Origin: Oikopleura dioica
Taxonomy: Eukaryota > Animalia > Chordata
NCBI GenBank assembly: GCA_907165135.1
Contig: OU015569.1
Coordinates: forward strand, 930,001 to 994,000
DNA length: 64,000 nucleotides
Reading direction: 5' to 3'
This document shows positions 14,145-63,536 of this stretch, in pieces. Below the pieces are notes generated by a model. It searched no databases. It saw only the letters and a list, made by a program, of their open reading frames with translations, and was not told where the DNA came from. Made by a program: the position numbers and the translations under genes. The first letter of the stretch is position 1. Every line of letters starts with the position of its first letter.

Positions 14145-14869
14145 ATGAGAAACTTGATTAAACTTTTGCTGGTCTTGGCGGTGGCAAATGCAACGGAGAT
14201 TAAAGGACACGACGGACTGAGCTCGACAGGAAGAGTTTCTAATTCAGAGCTGCAAATTTGCTGAGCTGGTTGAGCTGAGCTGAGCTAGCTGGGTGAGCTG
14301 AGCAGTCCCTCAGCTCAGTTCAACCAGCTCAGCTCTATTTAGGGTCCGCTCAGCTCAGCTCAGCTCAACTACCTTAAAAAAAAGGTCTGCTCAGCTCAGC
14401 TCCGCTCAATGACCTCTGAAAAAGGCCAACTCAGCTCAACTCAGCAAAATTTGCAAGTCTGTTCCAATCGAGTAGCCATTTTTTCGCTGAAAATGACTTT
14501 TGCTAATTTTGGAAACTGAAACAGGTGGATGTATCATTTACAACGCGCCGGACGGAAGCGTCGTGTGGGGATGTCCAGATCAGAGTTCAAAATACAGAAT
14601 AGTAATTCAGCTTAGCAAAAGTAGCTTATCTCGTGCGGAAAATAAATAACTGCTTAAAACGCATTTAGAAATAAACGTTGAACTAAACTGTTAGACTCTC
14701 TGCAAGGTAAATCGTGTCACCCAAACAAGAGCTACCTTATCTAGCGGCGCATACAGTCGTAAGCTACGAAAAACGAAAGCGAAGTTCGCCCATTCCGCCA
14801 TCCATGCGAGACGACCCATATTTTGCGAAGCTGATTGCCCGTCTCCGCGAGTTCTCAATTGGAGGATGA
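14145..14869 (+). CDS. Small secreted protein (~85 aa), possible peptide precursor; 4 exons
   Basis: Signal peptide MRNLIKLLLVLAVANA. Exons 14145-14205, 14525-14596, 14695-14706 and 14757-14869 join in frame (two GA donors, one GT). Two Cys and a KRKR site. Confidence 0.5.
14245..14461. mobile_element. MITE family B (CTCAG/CTGAG pentamer-rich, TIR CAGAGTTGCAAATTT)
   Basis: Inverted ends plus AGCTC(AG) arrays. Lies in intron 1 of the secreted-protein gene. Confidence 0.75.
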
Positions 14870-40200: not shown

Positions 40201-41790
40201 TTTCCGAGCCCTAATTAAAAATACGCCAGCGCGATTTTCCAGCCGCTCGGATTCTTGAAATTGAGGAGTCTTCAAGTTCAGTTAAACAGCTGCCCGACTG
40301 TACTAAACTGGGCTCGGCAACCTGAGTAAAAAGCCTGAGTCAGGGTTCTAAAAGAGTAAATTGAAAAGCCGCGTAGTAACCAAACTCAAGTAACCAACTC
40401 AATGAATTATTTTAACTTGCGAAGCCGCTTCGCGGCTTCGTTTAAAAGCCGCTACGCGGCTTTTCATTTTACTCTTTTAGAACCCTGACTCAGGCTTTCT
40501 ACTCAGGTTGCCGAGCTCAGGTACTAAAGAGGGAAGTAACTGTAAACTGCTTCCTTGTACAGCTTCATATCGACGTCGAATTTGCCCATTTTCGTGTCGA
40601 ATTGGAGGGTTCTATAAGAATGTTTTTAAGAATCGTTTTAAGTTCCTTTGAATTTCTCGAATTAAATATTTATTCGAGGATGGAGCCACGAAGTACCTCT
40701 TGACAGGTGTAATCCCTTCGTTGTAGGACACAATATATTTGTCTTCGTAGACACAGCGAAAGTGGAGCAACGTCAGATCGCGGTTTTTGTCGAGCTTTAA
40801 AGGGTTGACGGATGTGAACGAAAAACGCGCAACTTGATTCAAAGAGTCAATTCAAAATGCAAGTACTTTTGACCAGTTGTGGCTTTCTTCCACTGAAGAT
40901 CACGGTAATTAGAGGCCACGTTGCAGAGAAACGTTTAAGGGGGTAGATATCAAGAATTGGATTTGCTGTCAATGTTTTCTCAAATTTTTAACATAGTGAC
41001 CCCCTTATTTTTTCTGCTCAAAATTTATTTCAGGCAGTTATCTATTTCCTATTGAAGCCAAAAATTAAGATTTCTCGAGCTTTCGAGGTGCTAGAATGCA
41101 AATCTGACACGTCCGATTGTCGCCAAAATGACCATTTTAGGAAAGTTAGCGATCTTTGATGAACAATTTTGTTAAAATTTTTTGAAATTCAAATTTTCGG
41201 CTTCCACAAGAAATAGAGAAAGGTCTAAAGTTTTTGTTTCCAGAGTAAAATAAGGGTGTCACTATTTCAACTTTGGGAGAAAAGCCTGACGGAAAATGGC
41301 GATTCTTGATATCTACCCCTTAACTGATTTATACAGTTTTGAACCTTCAATTTGCTAGATGACGAAAACGTGTGGCCTTTGCGTGAGTGAGACGAAACAA
41401 TTCGTCTACTATAGTTTTTGTAAAAATAAACATATATTATGGGCGCAAATAGAGCCTTGTCAGCAGGTTCGCGTAACTTTTCCAGCGCTCGATTATTCAA
41501 ATAATTATGGAAGGAAAAAGAAAAAGAAATAGTTGCTCAACAAAAGATTACATTTTCGGAAATGCGCGAAATGCACTGCCAGTTGTTGCTAATGCATTTT
41601 TCCAGGCCAGCGTTCAAAGTAACCCGTGGCCGACCGCGATATCGATAAAAACAGCGTGGAAACGTAAACGCGCGTCTGTAGCCGTGCACCGTTCCTGTAA
41701 CATGATTTGATTTGTGTAGACGAAATCCTCGGTGTCGTGGACCACGTTTGTCCCGCAGCTAGTGAATGGAAAAAGAGTGTAAGCTTGTAC
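37220..41790 (-). CDS. ZP-domain protein (end of ZP-N, ZP-C, furin site, hydrophobic tail)
   Basis: FPFTSCGT...FVYTNQI, HFRCVYED, GKFDVDMKLY, TCFATDS, ARFSFKMFRF...YLHCEVRVC, and RRRR furin site. The 5' end was not found nearby. Confidence 0.8.
37440..37873. mobile_element. MITE family C (TSD GAAATTTT) with nested family A copy at 37559-37798 (TSD ACCCTAAC)
   Basis: Both 8 bp duplications are readable directly in the sequence. Confidence 0.85.
38527..38930. mobile_element. MITE family B copy
   Basis: AAAGTTGCAAATTTT start and CTGAG arrays, in a ZP gene intron. Confidence 0.75.
40308..40520. mobile_element. MITE family A copy with perfect 8 bp TSD
   Basis: GTACTAAA|CTGGGCTCGG ... CCGAGCTCAG|GTACTAAA. 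An 8 bp TSD fits hAT/P/Merlin-type mobilisation. Confidence 0.88.
40939..41319. mobile_element. MITE family D copy, TTAA TSD
   Basis: TTAA|GGGGGTAGATATCAAG ... CTTGATATCTACCCC|TTAA. Internal sequence is inverted relative to the 16674 copy. Confidence 0.85.
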
Positions 41791-41949: not shown

Positions 41950-44055
41950 ACGGGACAAACCAAGAAAAGGAATAGTATTTTTGAAAGACCAATAAGATTG
42001 CTGTATTTGGCCTACAAGCCAATCAAAACCCAGATCCAGAAAATCACTTTCTTTTCTTGGTTCTGTGGCAAAAAAGGGATGATTTCAAAAACTTTTGCGG
42101 AGCCGGAAATCATGAAAAAGTGCTAGTGCAGTTTTGTCGAGCTCGTCGAGACGAGTCGATTGGTATAGGTCACTTTTGAAAATTTTAAGGATTTACCGGT
42201 TAACCGGCTGGTTACCGGAAATCACGTTGTCAGCTCCCGTTTTTGTTTTAGTCGACGGATTTTCATGTTTGAAGTGTCAAAATGATCCTTATGATCAGGG
42301 CTACTGTAGCCTCCGAGATGAGCCCCATATCTCAACTCCTGCCGAGCTTATCACTAAAAGTTTGATTTTTACGCACTTTTTCAGTTTGAAAGTTCATAAA
42401 GTAAAATTTGTACGGTAAATACTAATAATTTTTGCGGTTTTGATAGAGAATTCAAAATTAATAATACCGACCGGTCAAAACTTTGTAACCAGCCGGTAAA
42501 AAGCGCTAAATCGAAATTATGCCCTCAAAAACCACTTTTGTGATTATATTCACACAGATATGTGAATTTCTGGAAATATAAATTATTCTAATGGTGATTT
42601 TTCGGAAACAAGGGATATAATGATGATAATGCGCTTTTACGCATCTTCAGCGGCCAAATGAAGTGCAGAGGACTCCGGCAACACAAGTTAAACTACCATT
42701 AAGTGCTAGAAGAAGACTTCGCTATAAAAAGTCTCAGAAAATGCGGACTAAGGTATTTAGATCTCTATTCAATTTTTGATCGAGCCTTTTCACTGACTTC
42801 TTTGAAGAAATAAATTCCAACGACACAACCTAAGACAGAATGATCTGTCGCCAGAATCGTGAATGTAAAAGCTTCGCCAAGAACTGAGTTCGCATAGAGC
42901 CAGCAGAGGAAAGCAACAGCCCAGGTTGTTCCAGTTATCATTGCTGGAATCACTGCTTACGGTTATAAATCTGGTTTACCCTAATAGGAACAGAATTAGT
43001 TCTTACTCTCAAAAGGAGAAATATTATTTTTCTCTCTTCATTTCTCTTAAATTAATTTTCCGTAGCGAGTCCCTGGAAAATCTCAAACTCTAAGTAGAAA
43101 AATATCGATAAAAGAGTTGTATAACTGAGATAAATGATGTGAGTGAGAATAACGGGGAAGCTTTCAGTTCGAGCGGGGTCTTTAAAGTAGACAGTCCAGC
43201 CAGATTTTTCGTCCTTGATTCTACATTTTAATTCTCGGCAAGCCGCTCATCTATTTGTGTTAATTCAACCAACTGTGAGAGATCTAACAAGCCTGCACGA
43301 TTATGAGTACTGCTAGAAATCACGAGTTAGTTAGAAAGACTCATGGATCTAATGAGAATATTCATCACCTGATTCCTGGCATCGAGGGCTCGAAGCTGTA
43401 TAATTTATTTAGCATCACTACTAGAATAATTTATATTTCCAGAAATTCACATATCTGTGTGAATATAATCAAAAAGTGGTTTTTGAGGGCATAATTTCGA
43501 TTTAGCGCTTTTTTACCGGCTGGTTACAAAGTTTTGACCGGTCGGTATTATTAATTTTGAATTCTCTATCAAAACCGCAAAAATTATTAGTATTTACCGT
43601 ACAAATTTTACTTTATGAACTTTCAAACTGAAAAAGTGCGTAAAAATCAAACTTTTAGTGATAAGCTCGGCAGGAGTTGAGATATGGGGCTCATCTCGGA
43701 GGCTACAGTAGCCCTGATCATAAGGATCATTTTGACACTTCAAACATGAAAATCCGTCGACTAGAACAAAAACGGGAGCTGACAACGTGATTTCCGGTAA
43801 CCAGCCGGTTAACCGGTAAATCCTTAAAATTTTCAAAAGTGACCTATACCAATCGACTCGTCTCGACGAGCTCGACAAAACTGCACAAGCACTTTTTCAT
43901 GATTTCCGGCTCCGCAAAAAGTTTTTGAAATCATCAGGGGTTAGACCAATTTATGGAATTGATTTTATAGATCAGGGTTTTGATTGGCCAGTAGGCCAAA
44001 TACAGCAATCTTATTGGTTATCCAAAAATGCGCTTCCATAAATTGGTTTAGTCCA
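41950..44055. mobile_element. Long-inverted-repeat (foldback-like) element with ~600 bp arms
   Basis: Arms ~41988-42598 and ~43414-44018. The near-identical core 42078-42590 / 43422-43935 gives identical mirror ORFs at 42134 and 43594. A related terminal sequence also occurs at ~26745-26870. Confidence 0.85.
42650..43230 (-). pseudogene. TMEM144-like 3' gene fragment with in-frame stops
   Basis: GKPDL*P*AVIPAMITGTTWAVAFLCWLYANSVLG...VVGIYFFKEV, then LLLALNGSLTCVAGVLCTSFGR*. Resembles the TMEM144 C-terminal helices from memory. TAA at 42963-42965 and 42957-42959. Confidence 0.6.
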
Positions 44056-44136: not shown

Positions 44137-44402
44137 GAATATAGGATAAGGATTAGCAGCTCCATGGCTCGGCGAGCTCGGATTAGCAGCGAAGGAAGCA
44201 GGAGCGCCATGACCTAGTTCTAGAAGCGGGAGGTGACACGGGCGTAAGAGAGCGAGTCACAAAAAGAAGCTGCTAGGAATCACGCAAGTCAGTTCCGAAA
44301 ATTATAGCCCCAGGCTATAATTTCTAATAGGGAAGGTTAAGAGAATTTTGAGAGCCGCCAAACTCGCGCAGCCGAGATTTCAAACAACTCTCAAAAAACT
44401 CA
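44137..44402 (+). repeat. Split direct repeat A1
   Basis: Identical by eye to 58540-58805. Confidence 0.95.
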
Positions 44403-45064
44403 TAAGGTAGACCATCATTTGGATTCTTACCACCTTTCCCAGTCCCAAGGACTTAAAATACCTAGTCCGTTTTAAGACTATAAACTAAAATTCACCTTCA
44501 GTCTCAGGACTTTAAACCCTAAGTCCGAAAAGACTTCCAAAACTAGAAAGTCTCACTCAGACTAAAAACTTAGCCCTGCGGGAATAAGGAAGCTCTAAGT
44601 CCTGGTGACTATAAAATTTTATTCTTTCCAAAAAATCTTTGGATAAGACGCTCCTTACTCCAGATTAACTTCCGCTAAGAGATGCGAACATATATCGTTT
44701 TCTCCTACACGCAGCCCAGAAGCTCAGCTCAAGAACACAAGCGGCAAGTTCAAACCCCAAGGGAACTAGGGCGAGCCGGGAGAGCGCAGCAGCCCAGCAG
44801 CTTCTTTTGATTCAAAATGCGCGCGCAGCAGGTCCCAGAACCAATAAGCGCGGGGCATTTTCAGGCTAGCGCAAAAACAGCCAAAACAGCCACCATTAAA
44901 AAAAAGAAGCTCAGAGAAAGGAAAGCAAAAGAAAAAATAAAGAACTCATTCTCTTTCTCTCTGCTCAGCTATCTACTGTGCGCACCCAAGAATCTTTTGA
45001 TCTTCCCAGCTGCTTCTGAAGCGAAGTTTTGAAGCTTCAAACCTTCGATTTCCGTATTTAGTGA

Positions 45065-48000
45065 ATGTTCGGAGAATCGTTCGTGAAAGCAGCCAAAAAT
45101 TACGCACCGAAATGGGGCCTAGCTTCCGATGCAACGCCAAAAGTGCCGCTCGAACATGCAGCTAAACATCTCCAAAAACTGGAGAAATCAATCTCCAGGA
45201 AAAGGCTCAAAAAAGAAATTGAAATTATCCCTTCTTTTTCCGTAAGAAAAGAAATCTTAAGCCTAATTCAAGGAACGACCTTCTCATGGACGCGATCATT
45301 GACTGGATGAGAATCTCCAGAACAATCCTCCTCTCGGGAGACGAGGAAATCAGAATCATCAGACTCTTCGTACTCTCCGACGTCCATAGCATCCTTGCGA
45401 ATCAGAATCTGGCTTTCAACCCGAAAACGCCAGAAAAGGCGAAGCTTCAATTCGAAGAATTAGCGTCCTGGTGCAAGATAATCTTCTGCTCCTCGAGTGG
45501 AAAGCAATCACTGTGGCTGACACCGAAGCAAAATAACCCGGCAAAGACGCTGGAACTCATCTCGGAGAACATTGCAGCCGCTGAAGGTAGAACGCTGGAA
45601 GATTGGCAGCTAGAATCTGCACCCAACCCTTTCAATCCATCAGTAAGCCCAACGAAGCTGACCATAAGGGGCACACCAGAGCTTCACCCAAGCGTCGATC
45701 TGGAAAAATTTCCAAGCTTCTCAGAGCTCCTGAACGAGATCAGAGCGGAAGGAAAAAGAGAAGTACCGCTAAAAATAGTGGCACGCAAGATTCAAAAGCC
45801 GCTCAGCAGCAGAAGCAGCGAGAAACTCCGCCTTTCTTCAGCCCCAGATCCGGAAGAAGCAAACAGACTTTTCCCAACGGCTCTCTTGGAAGAATTTTCC
45901 AAAAGACAAGCGTTACGCGCGGAAGAGTGGTTCACGGTCTGGGAGGACCTAGCTTACGATCAAGTCTTGGACCAGGGCTTCTGGCACGATGTCTGCTTCC
46001 AAATCATCAAGGAAAACCCGTCCAAAGCTCAAGCAGACTACGAACACCAAGGTTTCAATAGCCGCTCGTGGCTCGGAAAGCTGATAACTAAAGGACTCGA
46101 AGAAATCTTCAACGCAATCTACAAGATAGAAGCCCAGCCAACACCGTCAGAAATTCTGGCAAAACTCCAGATGCTTAAAGCCTCAAAAACCTGGCACAGC
46201 ATTTGCCACAGGGAGAACGCGTGGCTAAGCCTCAAAAGCTGCGAAGACACGAAATGGGCCAGAGAACCACCAAAAAACAGCGACGCCTGGATTCCGGAAG
46301 TGCTAGGAGAGTTTAATCATCAAGATTCCAGACTACCCTGCTCAACGCCGCTTACGAGAATACTCTCACAGCTCGTCCTCCACCTGACTCACGCGCAGCT
46401 CACGAATGATAGCATCGTGGGACAAGACGGCGAATGCTGCGAAATGATCACCCAGTGGCACTCGTCATGGAAAGAGCTGACGGAGGCAAAAACGCTGGTA
46501 CCATGGCTCAAAGCTGCAGCCAAAAAATATACTCCGTTGGACTCGACTCTCCGAATCAAGAAAGTAGGAGAGGGCAAGAATAACTGGACCATGTGGATCC
46601 CACATAAAGCAGCTCCGCAGCTTTGGATCGTATGCTATGGCGACGAAAATCCTGCAAGACGGGAAAAAGCGCTTCTGGCTCTGGCAGAACACCCAGTCCT
46701 CAACGAAAAAGAAGCCGGCATGCTCAAAAATCTGGCAAGCAAAAACTGGTCGAAGGAGAACTGCGAGGAATGCATCCAAAGCTTCAACAACCCGAAGAAC
46801 TTCTGGGGAAAGGACAGATGCATAGTCGGCACCGCAAGACCAACAACCACCCAGAAGCAGCTGCTCGACGTAATGGTCAGAATAATAAGAACTTTAAACC
46901 AGCATCCTGAAGTCCCAAGAGACGTAACGCACCACCTAAAAATCCTCACCACCGGATGGAAATGGCCAACGGGGGGAAAGTTTAGCCCCTCTCCAATTAT
47001 CGAAAGATTCACAGATGCCTGGCTGTTCTATAGAACCAAAGCAGCTGAAGACACAAAATTGGCCGTCGAAGCAGAAGCAGAAGCTAAAAGAATCTGGAGC
47101 TGCAAGTGGCCGCTGTGCAAAAAAGATGCCTGGTGCGAGAAGCATGGCCTAAAACTGGAAATCTGTGAGAAGAGAAAACAAGATTGCCAAGAACTCCACG
47201 AAGAAAAAGCTGCTGCCATCTCAAAAGGAAGGCCTCGGCGTAAAGCCTTAAAAATCACCGACGAGGAATGGCAAAACCTCCACCAAGATCTCTCCAAACT
47301 CTTCAGCAAGATTTCCCCAAAAGCGGCATCGGCAAGCCTGATCGAAAAACTTCAAGACACAGAAGTAGAAGGCTTCGACTCGATCATCGAAGCCTGGAAA
47401 TCAACGGAAATCCTTCTTGGAGGCGGCAACGAAAAGATAGCCGACTTCGCCAGAAGATTCAAAGCGTCAGACTCGACCGTCAAAAAGCGGGAGAGAACGG
47501 AAAATCCCTTTCAAAAAGGCCTGGTCATCTACCACAGTGCGCTCCAATACACCAGGAACGGATTCGCAGCTTTCCCAATCAGACGCAGCGCGAAAGCGCT
47601 GAATGAACCTCTCAAGATCTTAGCAGAAAGCATCACGGAGGTCAAGAAAGGCGACTGGCAGCAAGTAGCAGCCCTAATTGGACGAACAGCAGCGAAGCTA
47701 GACGATATAATCATCGTTCTGCCAAGCGAGGAAGATGCAGAAAGCCTCCGTAAGCAGCTCTGCCAAACCATTTTCAATGCGAAATTGGTAACGCTGGCAG
47801 AAAGCGAAAACCTTCATGCAAGATTCAAGGACGACGAGGAAAGAATCACAGGCATCTGGAAAATCGCGACTGTAGCCTGCGACGGCGAATACGACTCAGT
47901 CTTTATGCCGTGCTGGGCGCACCCGAGAGTCGCGGAACTAATGTTCAGAGTCTGCAATAACCGAGCCACGAAAAACTGGACAATTGGAGCGGCAAAGAAG

Positions 48001-48285
48001 TTCCAACTCAGAAGCAATAAAGCATCTTGGGAAGAAGTAGCTGCTGAAAAGCTCGACATAAGCATCAGCGGCCCATTCACCACCCATATCAGGGACATCC
48101 TCATGGACGGAGTCAAAGCTGCCGGCAGTTTCACCGCGAAAGAAGATCTCCCAGCTGCGGAACCGGAAAATTTCTTTCCGAATATCTGGACGCCGGCCCA
48201 ACAGGAAAGAGTCCAAAGAAAAAGAGAGAATCGGGAAATCCTTCCGGCCATAAAAAGTAAAAAAAAGGGGCCTAGGTCGACATAA
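45065..48285 (+). CDS. Element ORF-A, ~1048 aa, unknown function
   Basis: 999-codon ORF from 45286, extendable to ATG 45065 through an in-frame GA-AG intron at 45199-45272. Cys/His cluster CKWPLCKKDAWCEKH..C. Confidence 0.8.
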
Positions 48286-48938
48286 AGATTCTAGCAGCTC
48301 AGACTCGATAAAAGACGCTTGAAGAAAGACTGGCACGACTCCTTAGCGAAGGTTAAAGAATACACCGCCGCTAAGCCTAGAAAAATCCCACTCAGGAAAG
48401 GAAAAACTCAAAATTAAAAGAATTTTCGCCTAATTTTTCCACCGCCAACTTTATGAGACTCATATTTTACCATAGGAAGAGAGTTTTCCTAGAAAAAAGC
48501 AGCCCAAATAGAATCCACCAATTTTCCAAAGCAGCAGAATCAAAATCCTTCAAAACAGCGCCGGAGCCAATCAGCGCGCGGCGCGGCGCGGAGGCAGAGA
48601 AGCGAAAAAAGGAAAAGGAGAAAAAGAGAAAAAGGGAAACCTAGCGGAAAAAGAGAAAAACTCCTAAAAAAGAGAGAAAACGACCACACAAGAGGAAAAT
48701 AAGAGAAAAAAGCTGCAAAACAAGCCGCCAAAAACAAAGCTGCTAGTTTTTTATTATTTTCCCGAGAAATTTCGCCTCTTTTTTCCTTCTCAAATTTCCT
48801 CCCCTCCCATATTTCATTTTTAATTCCGCCAAAAATTCATTTTAGCTGCAAAATTTTAGCTGCTTCTACAAAATTTTGTTCACAAAAAAAGAAAAACTTT
48901 CCCCAATAACAAAAAATTCTTTTACAGACTCGGAAAAC

Positions 48939-51404
48939 ATGAGCAGCAAAAACAGCATCAAGCAGCCAAAACCCATCCTCAAGAAGGCCAGGGACGATCC
49001 AGAGGTGGAAGTCGACGAAGAAGAGGGCAAGATCTTCAGACGCCACCGGGCGAAGGTGGTCAGGGAGTTCACTGCACTTACGGAGGAGCTGGTCAAAGGA
49101 AAAGAGTCAAAAAAAAAAACAATTCATTTAGAATTAAAACAGTTAAAGACTCTCTTAAAAAAGGTCTCTTGGACGAAAGCCTCAAAATACCTCTCCAGAA
49201 GCACATGGAAGCGATAGCGGAAGCATCAAGACTCCTGTCGAAGACGATCAGAGAATCCTTCGACGATCTAGAGGAAGAACACCACCACCAGACGCCAGAA
49301 GCCCTCTTCTACTCAGCTCTGAACGTCGCCAGAAACTACGTCGACATCCCCTGGATCATCAGCCTCGTCTACCTCGAGGAAGGCGAAGACATCGAAGCAG
49401 CCAGGCCCAGCTACTGGGACAAGATCGCCGACGTCAAGGCAAACCGGAACTTCCGGTTTTTAGAGGACAGACCACTCTCCAAGGAAGAACGAAGAGAGAC
49501 GAGGAGAAGCATCAGAAAGCAGCTTATGAGGGAAAAGGGCTGGGAGCACGCGAAAGCGAATTCCTACGCGGTCAAGTACCTCCTCGACCTGCCGAAAGAC
49601 GAAGCGACCCAGACTCCAGCAGCACCTCAGAAGCAGCAAGAGTGCCAGACGGATCCAGGAAAGGTTTAATCACCAACAGAAAAATTACTAAAAGTAAAAA
49701 AAAAAAATCTGTCAGAATAAACAAGTGATTAACCTTCACAAAAGACTTGGCCCAGACAGAAGCTGAAGCCGCCAAGCAGCCTGAGATGCAAGAGGAGGAC
49801 AGCAGCGGCATCGACACCCTCCCCGAGGGCGTAGCCGTGGGCGACGAAGGAGACGACTCAAGCAGCGAAGACGACGATTCCTACAACGCCCAGTCAGGAA
49901 AGGATTTATTAATGCTCATAAATAAATAAAATGATAAGGAGCATTTATAAACCTAGAAAAGATCCGAGCCAGTTCGACCCTCCAGCCGTCAAGAACCCAG
50001 AGCAGCTCAAGCCAGTCGTCGAAGCTGACAGCGATGAGGAAGCAGAGGAGGACGTCGAGGACGCTAAAGGAAAGGGGAAAAACAAAAATAAAAATGAAAA
50101 CGTAAGCTTACAAATCCTAAAGAACTTCAATCTCTAGAAAAACCAAAATAATCCCCTCAGAAGGACAAGAGTTCAAGGGCTTCCCAGCCCAGGACCGGCA
50201 GAAGGAGCCAGAACAGTCCAGCTTCCAGGGAAAAGCTCAACTTCGACGCAGAATGGGCCGAGCGAATCGCAGGAGCGGCCTGGACGAACAAAAGCTTCAA
50301 GAGCAGCTCAAGAAAGAAGAAGAAGAGACCCTTCAGCGCCAGAAAGAACTGGAAGCGAAACGAGAGCAAGCAGAAGCTCAGCGACGCCAGCAAGCCCTCG
50401 AGATGCGCAAGCTTCAAGAAGAACAGGAGATCCAGCGACGACAGGAATTCCTGAAGAAGCAGCAAGAAGAAGCTGAGAAGCGCGAGCTCGAAAAGAAACT
50501 GGAAGCGGCGAGAAAAGAGAAGGCAAAACTGGAAGCGAAAGCGGCGGCGAAGCGACAGGTAGAAGAGAACACCAGAATCCGCCAGGAATACTTCGAGAAG
50601 AAGGAGCAGCAGGAACGAGAAGCCAAACAGCGCCAGGAAGCCGCCCAACAGAAGCTGCAACAGGAAACCGCCAAAGCCGCCAAAGCCGCCCAGTCCGACG
50701 ACATGCCGCTCAAGAACCCCCGAGTCAGCGTCTTCCAAGTGGCCGAAACTGGAGAGCGAGGAAATTACTATTTCCTCACTAAAAAACAAGGAAAGGGGAA
50801 AACTTTTTATATTTTTTACAAAAATCTAAAAACATAAATACAAAATAAAACAAAAAGTAAACCCTCAAAAAGCCAAGCTCATGGATAAGGCCAGCGTCCG
50901 CGAAGCCCTCAACTACAAACGCAGCTACAACGACAAGCTCAGCGAGGAGGAACGCCAAGCAGTCAAGGAGGCTTGGTACAGCAGCGTCAGCTTCGAGAAA
51001 TTCTCCAACACCAGGAAGCCTGACCACAAACTCGCAAAGTATCACCGAGCGAGCGGCTGGGTAATCAAGGATGAGCCTCCCTTCAACGCTTCAGACCTCA
51101 TCCGCAGCCACGAGATTCGAATGTGCCACTACGTGTTCGAATTTTTAAATTACAGAGGCATCAAGCGGCGATTCAAAGAAGCATACGGTAAGCCAAAAAT
51201 CATACTTCCAAAAACTAATAGCGATTTTCAGAAGCCGGCCTCATCGACCCACAGCGGCTGGACGTCCTCATGGTCTTCACCATGAAAATCGTTGGTGGAA
51301 GGCTGGTGAAGTTCATCCGCCAGATGTTCGTCCGCTGTTTCCGCGACCACGACATCGCCATCCCCAGCATCAACGTCGAAGCAGCCCCAGAGACAAACTA
51401 CTAA
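48939..51404 (+). CDS. Element ORF-B, ~677 aa acidic/coiled-coil protein, about 7 exons
   Basis: Exons 48939-49098, 49164-49658, 49745-49897, 49962-50069, 50161-50790, 50873-51187 and 51232-51404 join in frame via phase-1 introns. EK/Q/R-rich coiled coil at 50280-50690. Confidence 0.65.
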
Positions 51405-51885
51405 GCAGCTCAAGCATCGAAGCATCTACAGACAAGGAAATTGTCTTCCAAATTTGCATTCTGCCTCAAATTTTTCCTCTTTATCTTCAAACTCACTGAA
51501 AAAAAAATCTTCAAATGGCAGAAGCCAACTGTACTAGAATAAATTAGAAAGTCTCACTAGAAGACAAAAGACTCTTTCTTAAAAAAAAAAGACTTAGCAG
51601 AATTTGCAACTCAAACTAAAAATAAAAACGAAATAAAAGAATTCTTAAATTCAGAAGCCAAAAAATACCTTGTCTCGGGCATGGAAGCGGCTAAAGAAGC
51701 CGACGCTCTGGAGCTTCTAGTGCCCTCAGCTTCAGGAATAGGCAGCAGAGAGTCTGTTTCTCAAGATAGTCAAGCTACTTAATTATTTGAAATCAGGACT
51801 GATTCTAGTTTCGGTATTCTTACTTTAAGTTCCGAAGCCCAAGCAGCAAGGCCAAAAACGGCTAAACCTATTAAAATCCTCCTTT

Positions 51886-53250
51886 ATGATTCCCAAAAAA
51901 AATGGATCAATAATAAAGATGCTAAGCCTCAGACAAGAAGAATCCCTCAACAGCAGAGACTCAGTGGATTCAGACAATGCACCAGAGGCAGCCATCGCAG
52001 ACGAGCCCCGAATGGCCCAAAGCGAAGAGCCGAAGGCATCAAAAACCAGCCTGAAGCTAGAAATCCTCAAGAGTCTGATCTGGGACATTCAGAACAGCCT
52101 CAACACAAACGCGGCGGTGCCGCCCAAAAGAATCGCATGCTACGGAGAAACGGTAGCCGAAAAAATGTCCAACCTAGTGAAAGAGGCAATAAAAATAATT
52201 TCCGAATCCCAAGAAGCATCAAACCAAGTCCGAAAGATTCTGACTCAGATGGAGGAGGAAGAAACTGAAGCAGCAGAAGCTATAGAAGCTTTTCAAGCAA
52301 TCGCAACCATTTCTCACGCCACCTCTATCAAAATCAACCGCCGGCTAGCCTCGACTAACAAAATCGAGATCGAAGAACTCCAAAACATGCTCCAAAACAA
52401 AGTTCGACCAATAGTGGAAAATCTTATGAAACAAGTCCACAAGTCGCAAGTTTTTTGCTCAAAAGAGCTCGTGTTCTGGGCCAAAATGATGGAGCCCTCG
52501 GAGCAAGACTCAGTATGCAGCGAGCAGCTACTGAAGCTGGAAGAAGCCGTAACGTGGATCCTTGAGAAGCTCTGGAGTCAATCAGCAGCGGCAATCCTCC
52601 GAATGGCCTTGGCGAAATGTGAAAAACCAGCATCTATGACCTCGAAAACCTCGCCAAGATTTGTCATGCTTACGCATATCTGGAACCTGAGATTCAAACA
52701 AATCCTCAAAAGACAAGAAAGCGACAGAGAAGCGGCCTTCACGAACGAGCAGCAAATAGCAGCGGCCATCTCAAGGGCGATTTTCGGAGATATACTTTTC
52801 CAGATAACCAATACCCGCTGCATTTTCCCGAGGCTCCTGGCAAGTGCAGCACGCTCAGCATGGACCCACCTTAACAGCATGATAGGCGAATCCAACCCCA
52901 TCAGCTGCATCCTCAAAACTTTCCTTGCCAACATTGATTCAAATCCTAGCTTCACGGCGTGGGACGCGATTCTATCGCTTAGAAAAATCTGGCCGAACCG
53001 TGACAGCATCCCCGAGGCGGAATATAAAATCCTCAACTTGGGCGGGATCGATGATAGAATCGAACGGGGAATCGCTTACCCTGCCTCACTAAAGGGAACG
53101 ACATACGAGAAGCTATTTTGGCGCATCCCAATCCCTCGAAGCTTCGAATACAATGGATTCTACGGCCGAGGAAGCAAGAGAAAGAGAGAAGACGAAGAAG
53201 CCAGCGACATGGGCGAGCATCAAGGCAGAAATGGAGGCATTAGCAGCTAA
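51886..53250 (+). CDS. Element ORF-C, 454 aa, unknown (helical, possibly Gag-like)
   Basis: Uninterrupted ATG-started ORF immediately upstream of pol. No motif recognised. Confidence 0.7.
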   Translation: MIPKKNGSIIKMLSLRQEESLNSRDSVDSDNAPEAAIADEPRMAQSEEPKASKTSLKLEILKSLIWDIQNSLNTNAAVPPKRIACYGETVAEKMSNLVKEAIKIISESQEASNQVRKILTQMEEEETEAAEAIEAFQAIATISHATSIKINRRLASTNKIEIEELQNMLQNKVRPIVENLMKQVHKSQVFCSKELVFWAKMMEPSEQDSVCSEQLLKLEEAVTWILEKLWSQSAAAILRMALAKCEKPASMTSKTSPRFVMLTHIWNLRFKQILKRQESDREAAFTNEQQIAAAISRAIFGDILFQITNTRCIFPRLLASAARSAWTHLNSMIGESNPISCILKTFLANIDSNPSFTAWDAILSLRKIWPNRDSIPEAEYKILNLGGIDDRIERGIAYPASLKGTTYEKLFWRIPIPRSFEYNGFYGRGSKRKREDEEASDMGEHQGRNGGISS

Positions 53251-53337
53251 AGGAGCTTTCGAAAAAATGAACCGCAACATTATCTCACCTGTCACAATCT
53301 TAGAATCACCACTAAAAGGCCCAAAAACTCTCGAAGA

Positions 53338-55687
53338 GTGGAAAATTTACGAGTCAAAGCTGCTGCACAGAGTCTTAGACGTTTTGGAACACCGAGAAAA
53401 GCCAGATTGGACCACTTTGTTTTTCAAAAAGAAGCAGACTTCATCTCAGGAATCTGGACGCACAATAAGGAGAATTGGAGGACGCTCATTCATCAGATGC
53501 CGGAAAAGGTAAAGCCGCTCATCTACCACTTCGTCATGAACGGAGCAGATCTCTTTTTGAATCTAAAGGCGATCCCTCATACGAAGCCAGTGGAGTTCAA
53601 GAAAAAGAAGCTGGTCACAAGATGGAAGAGGAATCACGCAAACTCGGACGCGATAAAGAAGCTTGGCGGGAACCTCAAGACCTGGTACAACGGCCGCCTC
53701 AGGCTTTCAAAGTTCGTACCAAAACCCTACGAAAAGATCGGGAAAAGATTCAAAAAGCTGCAAGTTGCAAGCCAAGAAGCAGTCAAAGAAAGAAACGAAG
53801 AAATAATCGACCAAATATCCAAGTGGTGCAAAATGGGATCAATCTCAAGGCTCCCCGAAGCATCTAAAGATTCGTGGCTACAATCAGGATTTATTCTGGT
53901 AGACAAGCCGGGCAGAGAGACCAGAGTCTGCCTCAATGGGGGAATCTTGAAGCCGCTGCAGCTCTACAGCTTCCCCTGCAAACTGGAAGCGGTCGGAACA
54001 GCCATCCAGATGCTCAAAAAAGGGGATCTGCTCTACAAGTTTGATGATAAAAAAGGTACGTAAAAAGAAACAATATACCAAAAGTAACCGTCTCCTTTTC
54101 TCCAGGTTTTCATCAGCTGCCGCTTTCAGAAGAAAGCAAAAAGATGGCATGCTTCGGATGGGGCGGCCAAAGATTCAAAAATAACATCCTTGCGTTTGGC
54201 CTCCCAGCAGCACCAGGCATCTACCAGCTTATGAATCTATGCGGCGTAAATTTTCTTAGAAAGAATGGCATCAAAATCACGCTTTACCTCGACGACAGAC
54301 TCCTCATCGTCTCACCAGCTTCGGAGGAAGATAGAAAGCAGCTTCTGGAAGGAAAGAAAATCAGCAGAGAAGTGTGGGCAACAGCAGCTACATTAGTGGC
54401 GCTCGGCGGCTTCGTAAACATCGAGAAAAGTACTTTTCTCCCCACCCAAAGACTCGAGTTCCTAGGATTCATCCTCGACACGACCAAGGAAACAGTCGAG
54501 ATTCCGCCGCAGCGATGGAAGGCTCTCACTGCACTCATGGAAGAGGCACAAAATAAACAACTGGTAGAAGCGAAGCTGCTAGAACGAATCAGAGGAACAA
54601 TGGCAAGTATGGCAGAAGTTTTCTCCAACATGAGACTCCTGATCAGGCAAACGACACTCCTCATAAAACAGGCCGACAACAAAAACCTCGAGAAAGTCCA
54701 ACTTACGCCTCAGATCAAGGCAGAATGGGCAAGATGGAAGAAGCTGGAAGAAAAAGGACTCTCAAGAATCTGGACGCAGAACAGCCGCCAAGAAACAGGT
54801 CTGATCATCTACACAGACGCGTCATCACACGCAGGAGCCATCGTCATTGAACAATGGGGCTTAGAAGAAAAATTTGCCTGGGAAGCCGATTTAGCCGACA
54901 AGCACATTTGCATCAAAGAAGCCATGGCCATCCTCTACGCTGTCGAATGGTATGGCCCAAAGTTCGAAAATAAAAGAATCCTCTTTCTTTGTGACAACGA
55001 CTCGGTCGTCCAAGGAATAATAGCCGGAAGCAAAGACCTCGAGATGAACGACATCCTAGTCAGAATCTGGGAAATCGCTCAAAGATTCAACATCGACTTA
55101 AAATGCGACTGGGTCAGCACTAAAAAGCAGCTGGCAGATGCACCTTCGAGAATCATCGACTCAAGAGAGCAGCGACTAACGGCAAACGGCTTCGCATATC
55201 TGCAATCGCATCTCACGGACGCGCTGGACGTCGACGTGGCAGCAACGGTAAGTGAATAAGAAGGCGCCAAAACGCCAGAAACCAACCCAAAGAGAAAAAA
55301 GATCGAATTATTCTTTTTTTTAAGATCCTGAATTCAAAATGCAAGGACTTCATAAGCCGCAGAGAATCAAAAGGAGCGCTTGGAGCAGATTTTCTCAGCT
55401 TCCCCATCCATAAGCTCATGGGCAGAAAACTTTATGCCTTCCCGCCGCAAGCAGTGGCTTTCAGATACTTCAAGCGGCTTACAGAAATTCCGACGCCGTG
55501 GGTACTACTCGTGGCCATCTTCGAGACCGAAACGGCAGTCATCGCAGAAGCTAGATCAAGAGGCTACAGAATCTTCGACCTTCCATCAGACTCCATCTTG
55601 ACCCCAGCAAAAGTAAAAACCACAGCAGGCTACTGGAAAATAGCATCTAATATCTCAACTGTAAAAGCTGTAGCACACAGACTCTAA
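53338..55687 (+). CDS. pol: reverse transcriptase, RNase H and DIRS-type methyltransferase-like domain (3 exons; start undefined)
   Basis: RT: FDDKKG|FHQLPL, AFGLPAAP, YLDD, LEFLGF. RH: YTDAS, HICIKEAMAI, CDNDSV, LADAPSR. MT: DVAAT|ILNSKC..F.S...YAFPP. Introns at 54056-54105 and 55248-55324. Confidence 0.95.
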
Positions 55688-55777
55688 AAGCTGCTTCCAC
55701 TCGTAACATTTCCCACTCAAGAGAGTACAAGCCTTGAAATAAAAAGACCCTCTCTTTAGATCAAAAAAAAAGCTAGA

Positions 55778-57015
55778 ATGGCCGAACGCCAAAACGTGTT
55801 GTCCATGGTGAAGGAGCACCTAGCAGCAACGCAGCACGACTCAAAAACTAGAGCCACCCGATTCGCCATCACCCAGGCGGAATATGACGCTGCAAAAGAT
55901 GCGCCCGAAGCTTCAGGCGACATCCAACGACTCCAACTCGAAATCGATGACATCAGAGGCGACTTGGCAATGCACGATAGCATCACCGACGAACTCATCG
56001 TGAGTACCAGGGATACAAAAAAAAAAAAGAAAATCCCTTCATTTTTAGGCCGAGATGAAAACGCTCGTCGAGAATCGGGAAAGAAGCATCGCCATCAAGG
56101 CCGCCGAACCCAACGCCAGAAAGCGAACCGCCGAGGAGAATCAGTTCTACGACAAGAACAATCCAAAGGAGATCGCCGAGGTCCTCGAGAAGCTTAGCAG
56201 CAAGAAAATGGAGCGCTACAACGCGAAGTCCGGAATGCTCAAAGCCATCAAGATCCGCGAAGCGGAAATTGCAGACCTAACCTTCAAGAAAGGCGACTCA
56301 GCAGCAACTCACACAGAAGTTGACCCAGTCACGGGCAAAATATCCTACTTCAAGGTAATGGGGAAGAAAAGAAATTAAAAATAAACACCGATTCTAGACC
56401 CAAGTAGCAGCAATTGACCTCAACCAGCACGAAGGGGAAAACATCGACGACATGGGCCGTCTCTTCCGCCAATTCGTCACAGACCCGAAGAAGCAACGAA
56501 GCTTCAAAGGAGCAGAGCTTCTCGAGCTGCTTAGACGCTACAAAGAAGCCATGGGACCTGAGCACTCCGCGAAGCCAGTGGTCACGGCCATCATCGACAC
56601 GCTGATCAAGATGCCAGACATGCCAAGACGAAATGCGCTGCTCCGCTGCTCCTCCCTCATGACAGCAACCACCCAGCACGATTTCGATTACACGCTCAGC
56701 ATGAATTGGACCACACCGCACCACAAGAAATGGATGCAAGCGGCAATGGACGGTTCGGAAGACTGGCGAAACAACGGCAAAGACGGAAACAACAAAAAAG
56801 GACGCCGAGGGGGTTTTAACGACCAAGGCACGTACAAAAAACAGCGAACAGACCAACCCAACGGCCAGAAAACTGACCAATCGGAAGACCAGAAGGGCAA
56901 GAGCGGCAGAGGACGCGGAAGAGGTCGAGGCAGAGGTCGGGGCCGCGGAAGAGGAGGCGCCAGCAACTCCAACAGCAACGCCAAGAAGCTTCAGGACCAA
57001 GGAGGCGTCGAATAA
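55778..57015 (+). CDS. Element ORF-D, 381 aa, C-terminal RG-repeat (putative nucleic-acid-binding/Gag-like), 3 exons
   Basis: GT-AG phase-0 introns at 56000-56048 and 56355-56397 join three ORFs. Ends in GRGRGRGRGRGRGRGG. Confidence 0.8.
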
Positions 57016-57200
57016 AGCTGCTAATAAAAAAATCCTAAAAACTGCCCTGAAAACTAGCGAGTTCTCCCAGCTTCTTTAGTAAAAAAAGAAGCAACCCTCT
57101 CCCAGCTGCATTTAGCGTCGCCCGCAGCAATTTAAAAAATCTCTTAAAAAAAAAAGAATATAATAATGCAAAAAGCTTCAGGTCAATTTGTACTTCAGAA

Positions 57201-58365
57201 ATGACCTGGCTAGAATTCGAGCATCTAAAGGAAATCTGGGACGTTACGGAAGCGCTCACGAACCCCGAAGCGGAAGAAGCTGATGACGAATCCACCATCC
57301 AGAACTTTCTGGACAGACTCTTGGATAAACCGAAGCTCAAGGCTTATGCCTACGGCAAGGGCGTAGTCATTATCCAAGACGTAGCCGCATCGAAGCTAAA
57401 AAAGCCGCTCACTTCGAAGCTCAAGCGCCAAATCAAGCTTTGGTGCGAACGAAGGGCCAGAGAGTCAGCAAAAGAATCTCTCCAGTTCCCAAAGGTAAAG
57501 CAGCTACACAGCTCAGCCATTTAACTCGACAACTCAGCAAGCAGAAGTGCTCGACGAACCAGAAGCTGTAAAACTCTGGGACGAGCTCATGGAAACCAAC
57601 AAGCCCAAGCCTCGGGAGGTTGCTGTCGCATTCTTTGTCACCTACGTGACAGGAGCTAGAATGGGGGAAGCACTGAGCCTCAGAATCGAGGACCGAAGCA
57701 TCATGAAGGAAGCAGCTAAAGAATTCTGGCGCTTCCATATCAGAAGCAGCAAGACGGACCCTTTCTGTAAAAGAATGGAAACGCTCAATATCCCCATGAA
57801 TATAAACCACGGAGTGCCGCTAGCAGAAGAACTACGACACCTGGTCCGAGACAAAAACTCTGGTGAGAAAAAGCCTCAAAAAAAAAGAGGGAAGCCATAA
57901 AAATAACCCATTTTTAGGCCTGCTTTTTCCGCTGCTGGACGAAAAGACAAGCATTGCGGGGGACTACCTAAGGCGATACAGCGATAAGGCAAGAATCGGA
58001 AAAAAGGTAAGCCCGAAAACTTTTCAAAATAATCAACGCTTCAGGTTTCAGCACACTCCGGCCGAGTAAGCTTCTACATCGAAGGCCGCCGAGCAGGACA
58101 ATCGCAAAGTACACTAACCCACACAATGCGTTGGGCCCCGGGAAGCGCGATGCCAGATTACTACGAACGATGCTGGCTAGAATGCACAGACGACGGAGCG
58201 CCAGCAGCCATCGCGGAAGCTAGAGCAGCGAAAAGAAGAATCTCTAACCATTCAGAAGCTGAGAGCCCCGCCCAAAGCGACAACGAACAAGGCGAAGGCA
58301 TTACCAAGAGAGCACGTACAGACGTCGAACCTAGCAGCAGCACAGCCGAAATCCCAGAAGCTTAG
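57201..58365 (+). CDS. Tyrosine recombinase, 342 aa, 4 exons
   Basis: Catalytic set R (TGARMGE), K (SSKTD), HxxR (AHSGR), W (MRW) and Y (PDYY), restored by GT-AG introns at 57495-57537, 57863-57917 and 58007-58044. Confidence 0.92.
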
Positions 58366-58494
58366 AAGCAGCGGGCAATTAGCCAAGCTCCTTCACTAAG
58401 AATACCAAAAAACTGCCTTCTCCTCTCTTTTATATGCCATAAAATAAAGAGTCAGTTATTTTCCAAATGATGAGAATAACAAAAATGGTAGGGA

Positions 58495-58985
58495 GGGAAT
58501 ATTCCTGTTACCATATTTATTAATGCGTGATTACTATACGAATATAGGATAAGGATTAGCAGCTCCATGGCTCGGCGAGCTCGGATTAGCAGCGAAGGAA
58601 GCAGGAGCGCCATGACCTAGTTCTAGAAGCGGGAGGTGACACGGGCGTAAGAGAGCGAGTCACAAAAAGAAGCTGCTAGGAATCACGCAAGTCAGTTCCG
58701 AAAATTATAGCCCCAGGCTATAATTTCTAATAGGGAAGGTTAAGAGAATTTTGAGAGCCGCCAAACTCGCGCAGCCGAGATTTCAAACAACTCTCAAAAA
58801 ACTCACCCACCCTCCATCCCTAAGAACGAAAACGATAGTATGTAGGTAAAACGAGCACACGCTTACATACTACCCATTCCATAACCTAGACTCCCGATCT
58901 CCGAGCGGAGTCTCCCATAGTATAGTAATTGCGCGTGCTCGGGAATATTCCTGTTACCATATTTATTAATGCGTGATTACTATAC
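58495..58985 (+). repeat. 3' repeat block B1-A2-spacer-B2
   Basis: B1 58495-58539 abuts A2 58540-58805, then a 135 bp unique spacer, then B2 58941-58985. Confidence 0.95.
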
Positions 58986-59149: not shown

Positions 59150-60920
59150 GAGAAAGAAAGAAATGCAAGGAGCGGGCGAGGCAATTGCTGGGCCACATAA
59201 TTTGTGATGGCTAGGCAGTAATGAACCGGTTGGTCACAGGGCGGTTGATTGAATCAGCCCGACCGTGTTTGTCCACGTTTCGCTAAAATAGAGAAAGAAG
59301 GGGCTGCTTGTGTTCGGGTGTTGGCTCCACACAACGCGCTACAGGTGTGATGCAACGTTTTCGAAATTACGTTTTAGAACAAAAACTTTGTTTCACGGAA
59401 CCTCTACAATTAAATACGCGCCGCGGAGAGTTCCATCGCGGTTCAATCGACGCGATTTTAGACGGCTTATTAAAGGAGTGACTTATCACTTGTTCTGGAA
59501 GTAATAATTAATGAACAGATCTCGATAATATCAAGATCCTTGCTTGATTTTTGCTATAGTTATCTGTCCACCCAGAGTTGCAAATTTTGCTCTATTTTCG
59601 CTGAGCTGACCTGAGTAAAAAATTCTCTGAGCTGAGCTGGCCTTTTTCAGAGGAAATTGAGCGGAGCTGAGCTGAGCAGACCATTTTTAAGGTAGTTGAG
59701 CGGAGCTGAGCGGACCCTAATTAGAGCTGAGCTGAGCTGATTGAGCTGAGCTGAGCTGTTTTTTACTGTGTTTTTAGTAGTAAAATTGAGTTAAATTAAT
59801 TTTAACCAAAAAAGGTGGATTCTGAGTTGCAAATTTGCTGAGCTGAGCTGAGCTGAGTGAAAATTGTCTGAGCTGAGCAGATCAGATCATTTTCAAAAAT
59901 TACTGAGCTGAGCTGGGCTGAGCGACTGCTCAGCTTACTCAGCTAGGTCAGCTCACTCAGCTCAGCAAATTTGCAACTCAGAATCCACCTTTTTTGGTTA
60001 AAATTGATTTGGTTATTGAAAATTGAAGGACACGAGTCTAGATGCTCTTGAATTGAACAAAATACTCGTGCTGTAAACATTTCCTTGGTGCCGTCGAGAA
60101 CCGAGAAGCAGTTTTTGTTCCCTCTGAAGAATATCTTTGTTGGATCGTCGACACCTTTTTTTGGGAGAGCGAGAGTTAAAAATTTTTAGAAGAGCCTCGC
60201 GACCCATAATTCGCAACCTTATCGCCTCAACGTAGCGGACGTCGTGTTATCGGCGCCTATATCGCGTAGTATGTACTTTGAGGAAAACAAACGCCAGCAT
60301 TTGAAATATCCGGTGTCGATCCCGCTTCGTTAAATTACATAGGAGAGCACCATTCAAAAGAAAATACGAAACAAGGGACGAGTTTCTAAGGCGTTCAAAA
60401 AATTCAAGTTCCACTGGCGATTAGCATTTTCTAAGGTCTTCAAAAGAGGATTCCTCTCTCTTTTCTTGTCTCCTTTCCTAGTTTCATCGCCTCGAGTTCT
60501 GCCATTTCGAAGCTGATTTCAATTTTATCAGAGCCACATTCCAGGTTCGGCCCTTTCTTCTTATCGGCATTTTTAAGCTTATCCCAGGTGCTCAAATTCT
60601 AAGTTTACAAATTTTAAAGAACCTTCGACAGATTCATCGATGAACTGAGCCGATAGTGTTCATCAAAAAAAGTCACCAAAAAACCATGATCAATTATATC
60701 CGCTCCTCTGTAATTACAAAAATTGAGACCACGTTGAAGCTCTAGAATCCATCTTGGTAACCAAATTCTTCAAAAAAGCTTCTCTCGTGAAGGAAAAATC
60801 TCTCTCTCTCTTTTTTAGACCTGGTTCCTTGACAGCTGAATTTTCAAAGCGAGCCAAGAGGCGATCGTTTTTGAACTGAGCAAAAGTCAGTCCGAGAAAA
60901 ACTGCTAAAATCAGGCGCAT
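59150..60920 (-). CDS. 5' part of a secreted ZP-N-type protein gene
   Basis: Signal peptide MRLILAVFLGLTFAQ (ATG 60920). Exons with LECGSDKIEISF, IFFRGNKNCFS and RRVFNCR resemble the ZP-N cysteine spacing. Confidence 0.5.
59573..59981. mobile_element. MITE family B composite
   Basis: CAGAGTTGCAAATTT ends, with an internal second start at ~59820 whose inverted repeat extends ~25 bp into the flank. Confidence 0.78.
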
Positions 60921-61152: not shown

Positions 61153-61778
61153 CAGACTCTGGACTCCAGAGTTGCAAATTTGCTAAGTGAGTGAGCTTTT
61201 TTTAAGGTAGTTGAGCTGAGCTGAGCAGACCCTAATTAGAGCTGAGCTGGTTGAGCTGAGCCGTTTTTTTCCTGTGTTGTTAGTAGTAAAATTGTGCTAA
61301 AATCATTGAGCTGAGCTGAGTGAGCAGTCAGCTCAGCTCAGCGATTTTCGAAAATGATCTGATCTGCTCAGCTCAGCTCAAATATTTTAACACAGTTTTA
61401 CTACAAAATCACAGTAAAAAAACAGCTTAGCTCAACCAGCTCAGCTCTAATTAGGGTCCGCTCAGCTCAGCTCAACTACCCTTAAAAAAGGGTTTGCTCA
61501 GCTCAGCTCCGCTCAATGACCTCTGAGAAAGGCCAGCTAAAAACACAGTAAAAAACAGCTCAGCTCAACCAGCTCAGCTCTAATTAGGGTCCGCTCAGCT
61601 CAGCTCAGCTCAACTACCTTTAAAAAAGGTCTGCTCAGCTCAGCTTCGCTCAACGACCTCTGAAAAAGCTCAGCTCAGCTCAGCTCAGTAACCTCCAAAA
61701 ATAAGCCACCTCAGCTCAGAGAAATTTTTACTCAGATCAGCTCAGCTCAGGAAAAATGGAGCAAAATTTGCAACTCTG
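61153..61778. mobile_element. MITE family B composite with 8 bp TSD
   Basis: GTGATGTC|CAGA ... GCAACTCTG|GTGATGTC. Several internal CTCAG modules in both orientations. Confidence 0.82.
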
Positions 61779-63305: not shown

Positions 63306-63536
63306 CTGGGCCCGGCAACCTTTGTTAAAAGCCTGAATCAGGGTCTGAAAGAACTGAAATGAAAAGCCGCGTAGCGGCTTTTTTAAAAACAAAGCCGCGA
63401 AGCGGCTTCGCTAATATTACCGTTTTAATCTACTAAATCTTCAGGCGAAGCCGCGCTGCGGCTTCGTTTTTAAAAAAGCCGCGTAGCGGCTTTTACTTCA
63501 GTTCTTTCAGACCCTGACTCAGGTTGCCGAGCCCAG
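63306..63536. mobile_element. MITE family A copy with perfect 8 bp TSD
   Basis: TTGCAGGA|CTGGGCCCGG ... CCGAGCCCAG|TTGCAGGA. Confidence 0.88.

Follow-up and report, generated by a model that had tools for sequence, protein, structure and literature searches.

We analysed a stretch of 64,000 nucleotides (nt) of Oikopleura dioica DNA (contig OU015569.1 of the OKI2018_I69 assembly GCA_907165135.1, positions 930,001 to 994,000; hereafter the window), in which a retrotransposon of the tyrosine-recombinase (YR) type occupies positions 44137-58985 of the + strand (14,849 bp). These bounds agree exactly with those of an earlier note, made from the letters of the window, which had proposed a YR retrotransposon with PAT-type split direct repeats; the repeats, the domains, and the collinear relatives described below bear this out. 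The repeats are arranged in the order A1...B1-A2-spacer-B2. The left copy of repeat A (A1, 44137-44402, +) and the right copy (A2, 58540-58805, +) are identical at 266 of 266 bases, and the internal copy of repeat B (B1, 58495-58539, +) and the terminal copy (B2, 58941-58985, +) at 45 of 45. B1 directly adjoins A2, and a 135-nt spacer (58806-58940, +) separates A2 from B2. Since the terminal repeats are identical, the insertion is recent, as had been suggested earlier. All long open reading frames (ORFs) of the element lie on the + strand, and the coding strand is A-rich only inside the element (AT skew of 0.27-0.39 within and about 0 outside). Repeat comparison of the window revealed no inverted repeat involving the element ends, and no further copy of the element was found elsewhere in the 64 kb. 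An Rfam search and a tRNA scan of the element returned no RNA genes.

Relatives were compared by fetching loci around related genes: L001 and L004 from Okinawa chr1, L002 and L005 from Bergen, and L010 from the PAR. The same split repeats were present in L001, L004, L005, and L010, with lengths of 14.5-15.2 kb, and the 45-nt repeat B was conserved between diverged families. We found no target-site duplication in the flanks of the window copy, L001, L010, or L004, with a possible 3-nt microhomology in L004. The spacer between A2 and B2 folds into a long hairpin, and this fold is conserved in the window copy, L001, L004, and L005. Its GC-rich stem is invariant, its loop is variable, and the first base of B2 is where its 3' arm ends; three compensatory pairs were counted, in four sequences only.

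The element is predicted to carry eight genes, each with its own start and stop, in the order A, B, C1, C2, D, pol, X, and YR. The pol gene (53093-55687, +) encodes reverse transcriptase (RT), RNase H, and an apparent methyltransferase-like domain. It is followed by gene X (55778-57015, +; 381 codons) and the YR gene (57201-58365, +; 342 codons). Pfam was run on every open frame of at least 70 amino acids (aa) and on each exon singly, and the only matches in the element were to RT (RVT_1, E = 9e-10), RNase H (RT_RNaseH, weak), and Phage_integrase (weak, on a window exon of YR). The RT has a YLDD motif, and its nearest solved structures are the Ty3 and caulimovirus RTs; a search of PDB sequences with a pol-YR relative returned only RTs. 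The RNase H shows the pattern TDAS...E...D...D. The Phage_integrase match was stronger on the relatives' products (E <=1e-5 on that of L005), and the recombinase residues R, K, HxxR, H, and Y were all found in the exon translations. The window copy has the catalytic motifs of all three enzymes, RT, RNase H, and YR. For the methyltransferase-like domain, the 76%-identical relative P0001 aligned in one stretch through the Dam-match region of the DIRS-type pol P0052, YAFPP included. Gene X has a basic C-terminal part with an RG repeat and is, by its composition, a candidate for nucleic-acid binding. In the copies examined, pol starts in the +1 frame within the end of gene D.

The roughly 9 kb upstream of pol codes for proteins without detectable relatives outside the element family, in agreement with the earlier note. 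This part begins with a leader (44403-45064, +), in which a donor-like TAAG/GT lies 4 nt after A1 and an AG acceptor 3 nt before the start of gene A. Gene A (45065-48285, +) consists of a short conserved 5' exon from the ATG at 45065 and a main ORF of 999 aa (45286-48285). In the window copy, the 5' exon reaches the main ORF in frame only via a non-canonical G(C/A/G)..AG intron. Gene B (48939-49669, +) has about 210-230 codons and one intron. Gene C1 (50253-50837, +) encodes 194 aa rich in E, K, Q, and R, probably forming a coiled coil, and gene C2 (50881-51404, +) has 159 codons and a shared GT..AG intron at 51188-51231, the eighth intron placed in the window copy. The DNA alignment of the B-C1 region was too poor to fix the gene bounds there. 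Gene D (51886-53250, +) encodes 454 aa, or 443 from a second ATG at 51919, and overlaps pol; lying directly before pol, it is a gag-like candidate by position only. An exhaustive phmmer search with ORF-A gave 13 matches, and those looked up were O. dioica proteins or fragments from metagenomes and sequencing runs, none of them informative. Gene A had no Pfam, PDB-sequence, or fold match. AlphaFold2 modelled ORF-D as all-alpha with a mean pLDDT of 68 and ORF-A with a pLDDT of 51. The earlier note had listed four further long ORFs beside those for pol and YR: ORF-A and ORF-D are long, but the remaining ORFs are shorter or split, and pol, X, and YR each run over several frames.

Apart from one frameshift in pol, the frame splits of pol, X, and YR arise because short shared introns interrupt their coding sequence. 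In five-way DNA alignments, GT...AG stretches interrupted conserved coding sequence at fixed codon positions. These stretches differed between copies in length and sequence, and the frame in which coding resumed varied by copy. Shared introns were located in pol (54056-54105 and 55248-55324), X (56000-56048 and 56355-56397), and YR (57495-57537, 57863-57917, and 58007-58044). Across seven introns and five copies, 32 of the 35 stretches were bounded by GT..AG, and they measured 38-87 nt and stood at the same codon positions; the median O. dioica intron is 49 nt (PMC8008620). Mean pairwise identity in the same set was 0.42-0.52 within introns and 0.49-0.74 in the flanking exons. A codon walk that skipped the introns stayed in open frame up to stops common to all copies (381 codons in X, 342 in YR, 159 in C2, and 501 in pol after its first intron). 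The gene models of the relatives, at 382-384 aa for X and 331-333 aa for YR, agree with the sizes that the walk gave for the window copy. Furthermore, the same two pol introns were used independently by the Okinawa and Bergen annotators. One intron lies within the RT core, with the conserved residues FDDKKG on one side and FHQ on the other. Counted over the element, the short spliceosomal introns number at least eight and probably ten, and relatives with a 25-75% difference in protein sequence have them in identical places. Neither these introns nor the eight separately bounded genes had been noticed in the earlier note.

The intron set is not fixed across the family. Locus L005 has an additional GT..AG intron of about 45 nt in pol (L005 about 11105-11144). 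In L003, a truncated copy of the element family, gene A is one open frame without the 5' intron present in the other copies (seen at L003 10001-10260), and distant relatives from metagenomes lack the intron at the RT position. Differences of this kind between families are a natural archive of intron gain and loss in a genome noted for intron turnover.

The genes upstream of pol are an integral part of the element. Collinearity was judged from translated pieces of the window copy against the relatives' loci. The order A, B, C, D, pol, X, YR was collinear in L001, L004, and L005, and in L002 as far as its fetched DNA runs. Protein identity between the window copy and its relatives was 24-41% in gene A and 51-76% across the pol pieces; the best matches of the RT-RNase H exon were O. 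dioica proteins, with identities of 76% (OKI2018_I69 models) and 65% (Bergen models). The copies in L001 (chr1) and L010 (PAR), which belong to a sister family, have 99.3% identity over precisely the A1-B2 span, and their surroundings are unrelated. As this identity is confined to A1-B2, the 14.5-kb unit moved as one piece, accessory genes included. A refuting case named in the earlier note, other copies without ORF-A, ORF-B, and ORF-C, did not materialise, as these copies carry all three. Between L001 and L004, dN/dS was about 0.15 in gene A, 0.09 in D, and 0.03 in pol. Gene A, with a pN of 0.24 and a pS of 0.69 (saturated) in the same pair, is under purifying selection.

Gene models related to the element family were found on Okinawa chr1, the PAR, the YSR, and one unplaced scaffold, and on several Bergen scaffolds; the window copy's own subfamily was found once among the annotated proteins. 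The public gene models, both in the window's own record and at L001, L004, and L010, fuse or truncate the element genes. One model of 1363 aa joins pol, X, and YR, and another of 1060 aa starts within gene A and ends with C2. The element genes are filed in both public annotations as host proteins ('unnamed protein product', 'ribonuclease H'), and this treatment as ordinary host proteins is worth correcting.

A look-up of pol relatives led to more distant ones in metagenomes. An ENA scaffold of 25.1 kb (L007) and two ENA contigs of 24.4 kb from two samples (L008 and L009) carry intron-free pol and YR genes that are 25-41% identical to those of the window, set in same-strand arrays of at least 20 ORFs. 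In a profile comparison with the alignments of genes A and D, the large ORFs of L008 that were compared showed no likeness to either gene. In L008, two B-like repeats of 55 nt lie about 6 kb downstream of YR, with 326 nt separating them. These contigs suggest that still larger relatives exist in marine hosts.

The window copy is full-length, very young, and nearly intact. The earlier note had called it apparently intact, which holds for the terminal repeats and the catalytic motifs but not for pol, where we found one frameshift and zero premature stops. Apart from this one true frameshift, the frame changes read mostly as short shared spliceosomal introns, and under the shared-intron model no break was found in the other seven genes. 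A shift of the same kind lies at the homologous spot in L004, and none in L001, L002, or L005. Because the Okinawa assembly is Nanopore-based, with an estimated error of 1.3% (PMC8008620), the pol frameshift may be an assembly artefact.

Taken together, we put at about three in four the probability of the following reading: the element is a full-length, very recently inserted YR retrotransposon of the DIRS order, from an O. dioica family with PAT-type split repeats, eight genes, and shared spliceosomal introns, whose messengers are made by splicing and whose unspliced RNA serves as template. Several points weigh against it. Intron retention is unusual for a retroelement, and movement as DNA could explain the retention too. 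No canonical GT..AG join connects the 5' exon of gene A to its main ORF, and the bounds of the A and B introns are not fixed. The methyltransferase-like domain gave no Pfam Dam match in the Oikopleura proteins, and no named DIRS, PAT, or Ngaro reference appeared among the matches of the searches for relatives. In the phylogeny-based count of Piednoel et al. (PMC3266345), the O. dioica elements fall under the DIRS1-like and not the PAT-like group. The pol frameshift means that the window copy itself may depend on other copies. Finally, promoter, leader exon, acceptor use, and the mode of splicing (cis or trans) are deduced from the sequence.

The signals around the genes suggest how such an element could be expressed. 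Each start codon lies 0-11 nt downstream of an AG, with a pyrimidine-rich stretch before the AG in several genes, and the relatives are alike in this. After each stop, A[AT]TAAA occurs within the intergenic spacer. The donor-like TAAG/GT after A1 is common to all Okinawa copies and weaker in L005 from Bergen; beyond it, the leader is variable in length and unalignable. Transcription would start in A1, and the full-length unspliced RNA would be the template for reverse transcription, so that introns would persist in every copy. Messengers could be formed by splicing to the acceptor ahead of each start codon, with the donor site conserved 4 nt downstream of A1 or the spliced leader of the host (PMC6883708) as the partner. 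Every gene would then have its own mRNA and, as in the operons of the host, a poly(A) signal following its stop. For pol, reading in the +1 frame would set in at the end of gene D; the opening of pol in that frame inside gene D suggests a D-pol fusion produced by frameshifting. In the established model for the order, the cDNA would then be closed to a circle via the internal B1-A2 junction, and the recombinase would insert the circle without a target-site duplication.

This arrangement presents a paradox. The enzymes need splicing, as one conserved intron interrupts the RT core and three lie in YR, yet copying must use unspliced RNA. Retroviruses handle the conflict between spliced and unspliced RNA by dedicated RNA-export control. 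The paradox is directly testable with existing Oikopleura RNA data. We tentatively extend the preferred reading to that of a complex retroelement, a proposal that we regard as possible and somewhat short of an even chance. The eight genes would form one transcription unit, with messengers made through a common leader or the host spliced leader. The replicase would be readable only after intron removal, with the unspliced RNA being copied, and some of A, B, C1, C2, D, and X would form a particle or keep spliced and unspliced RNA in balance. In this reading the family would be part of a wider marine clade of larger relatives, represented by the same-strand arrays of at least 21 kb on the 24-25 kb metagenome contigs.

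Four other explanations were weighed. The first is that the element now moves as DNA, with the recombinase excising and reinserting the unit as in Cryptons, and that introns are kept without any unspliced template. The introns in all copies fit this idea, and the direct repeats A1/A2 and B1/B2 could be the recombination partners. However, no part of the element is more conserved than RT and RNase H (dN/dS of about 0.03, motifs intact), which would be unexpected if they were dispensable. In addition, one family is cleanly without an intron and has kept its frame, the type of loss given by reverse transcription of spliced RNA, and the A-rich skew of the coding strand is typical of retroelements. 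We consider movement as DNA unlikely.

The second explanation takes the element as an endogenous virus-like agent, related in style to retroviruses, whose accessory genes supply particle or entry proteins. The earlier note had spoken of a virus-like gene complement, and this claim is unsupported because no membrane span, viral family, or fold match was found. No element product has a hydrophobic segment at the level of a membrane span. Among every open frame of at least 70 aa and every exon, Pfam matched no capsid, protease, envelope, fusion, or integrase family, which is weak evidence. Foldseek comparison of the A and D models with solved and viral structures gave no match at E <=0.001 and query-normalised TM-scores of at most 0.17, and this too is weak evidence, as the models are of low to moderate confidence. 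Six of the eight proteins are without an assigned function, the size and gene number exceed those of any described member of the order, and O. dioica does host retrovirus-like Ty3/gypsy elements with env genes (PMC5240408); even so, we judge the virus-like reading of the element to be decidedly improbable.

Third, the locus could be composite, with an ordinary PAT-like element of 6-7 kb (D, pol, X, and YR) joined to captured host DNA or a nested insertion that supplied A to C2. Genes A to C2 are without relatives outside the element family and evolve faster than pol, and the pol/YR relatives in metagenomes have other, unrelated accessory ORFs, all of which would fit such a history. Against this, A to C2 stand in the same order in every copy examined, in two host lineages and in families down to 24% identity in gene A. 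Two young copies are alike from A1 to B2 and in nothing further out, no repeats or target duplications surround an inner insertion, and gene A is under purifying selection. Any capture would be older than the whole element family, and a composite locus has little probability. Lastly, a decayed pseudogene copy with damage in place of introns is hardly credible: each of pol, X, and YR is indeed spread across several frames and pol has a real frameshift, but the interruptions fall at identical codon positions in five copies (GT..AG in 32 of 35), vary in length and sequence between conserved flanks, and leave frames open to conserved stops when removed, and the terminal repeats are identical.

Other repeats and ORFs lie around the element in the window. 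A foldback-like unit (42087-43925), about 210 nt upstream of it, has two inverted arms of 416 nt that are 99% complementary. The arms are 1007 nt apart, further and shorter inverted pairs lie nested within, and the unit is probably either a DNA transposon or a miniature inverted-repeat transposable element (MITE) with long arms. Several families of short repeats of CTGAGCTGAG-type motifs, direct and inverted, occur on both sides of the element (14309-14438, 15848-16115, 38557-38930, 59627-60010, and 61196-61699). Similar repeats flank the relative in L004, and they probably represent an abundant MITE family. A repeat of about 80 nt with a GC-rich hairpin core has at least six copies in the window (111-268, 717-847, 3737-3859, 37560-37638, 40309-40519, and 63307-63385) and was also seen beside an unrelated copy of the element on chr1 (L001 18515-18699 and 19876-20013). 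The + strand ORFs of 265, 286, and 271 aa at 10719-13355 share the A-over-T skew of the element and may be the remnant of an unrelated retroelement; they had no significant Pfam match and no similarity to the element. On the - strand, a 155-aa ORF at 5280-5747 encodes a RING-type zinc finger (Pfam zf-RING_UBOX, E = 2e-7) and is probably an exon of a host gene.

We compared the element with the known groups of retroelements. The features of the DIRS order are present, namely an RT and RNase H related to Ty3/gypsy, a YR with its catalytic residues, and the absence of a target-site duplication. The DIRS1-like elements belong to the same order and have what appears to be the same pol domain set (RT, RNase H, and methyltransferase-like), and one of them, OdDIRS1 (GenBank AY634219; Volff et al. 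2004, as cited in PMC2685390), comes from the same host species. However, DIRS1-like elements are marked by inverted terminal repeats together with an internal complementary region (PMC3266345); the window element has direct split repeats and no inverted repeat at its ends. The Ngaro and VIPER groups are likewise YR retrotransposons, Ngaro with split direct repeats, but they are without a methyltransferase-like domain (PMC3266345), whereas the window element appears by alignment to have a methyltransferase-like stretch, with no Pfam match. The features of LTR and retrovirus-like elements, such as Tor of O. dioica, were not seen: the element has no terminal long terminal repeats (LTRs), protease, DDE integrase, or target-site duplication. 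The Pfam run gave no aspartic protease or DDE integrase match, which is weak evidence.

The element also resembles PAT and the PAT-like elements, which include PAT of Panagrellus redivivus, its nematode and sea-urchin relatives, and kangaroo and TOC3 of green algae. These elements also have split direct repeats, genes on one strand, a pol with RT, RNase H, and a methyltransferase-like domain followed by YR, and no target-site duplication. In the window element we found the split repeats, seen in four relatives as well, an RT and RNase H, pol and then YR on the same strand with gene X between them, and no target-site duplication; a methyltransferase-like domain after RNase H is suggested by the alignment of P0001. 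By its ends, domain set, and gene order the element would fit the PAT-like group. It differs in being 2-3 times larger and in having about ten introns and eight genes instead of two or three, five of them ahead of pol and one more between pol and YR.

For the introns, the nearest parallels are the Ogre LTR retrotransposons of legumes and the Penelope-like elements, in which one intron is kept in genomic copies. There, as here, the template must be unspliced and the messenger spliced. The difference lies in the number, as the window element has 8-10 introns in five or six genes, including the RT core, with turnover between families. For the gene layout, the complex retroviruses and the operons of O. 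dioica offer a functional analogy only: one long transcript would be both the genome and the source of spliced messengers, with an acceptor before each gene. O. dioica resolves its operons by spliced-leader trans-splicing at AG acceptors (PMC6883708). The LTRs, protease, DDE integrase, and envelope of the complex retroviruses are not found in the window element, and its splicing is deduced from sequence. With eight genes and about ten short introns kept in every copy, the element resembles in its build a small host operon or a complex retrovirus more than an ordinary jumping gene.

DIRS-type elements are known in O. dioica (PMC2685390, PMC3266345, PMC5240408), and the Okinawa genome paper names no DIRS elements and leaves 44% of the repeats unclassified (PMC8008620). 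We found no mention of the size, accessory genes, or introns of the O. dioica DIRS-type elements in the searchable literature, which excluded Volff 2004 and Denoeud 2010. The suggestion in the earlier note that the lineage is undescribed therefore has to be narrowed: elements of this type are on record for the species and its genome is published, and it is for the size, gene set, and introns, in the literature so delimited, that no description was found. YR retrotransposons are usually 4-6 kb long, with two or three overlapping ORFs. The window family, at 14.5-15.2 kb and with eight separately bounded genes, five or six of them without an assigned function, is about three times the usual size. 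The unusual size that had been noted at the outset is confirmed against the 4.0-6.3 kb of 28 characterised DIRS1-like elements (PMC3266345). As far as could be checked, no organisation reported for the order would be larger or richer in genes.

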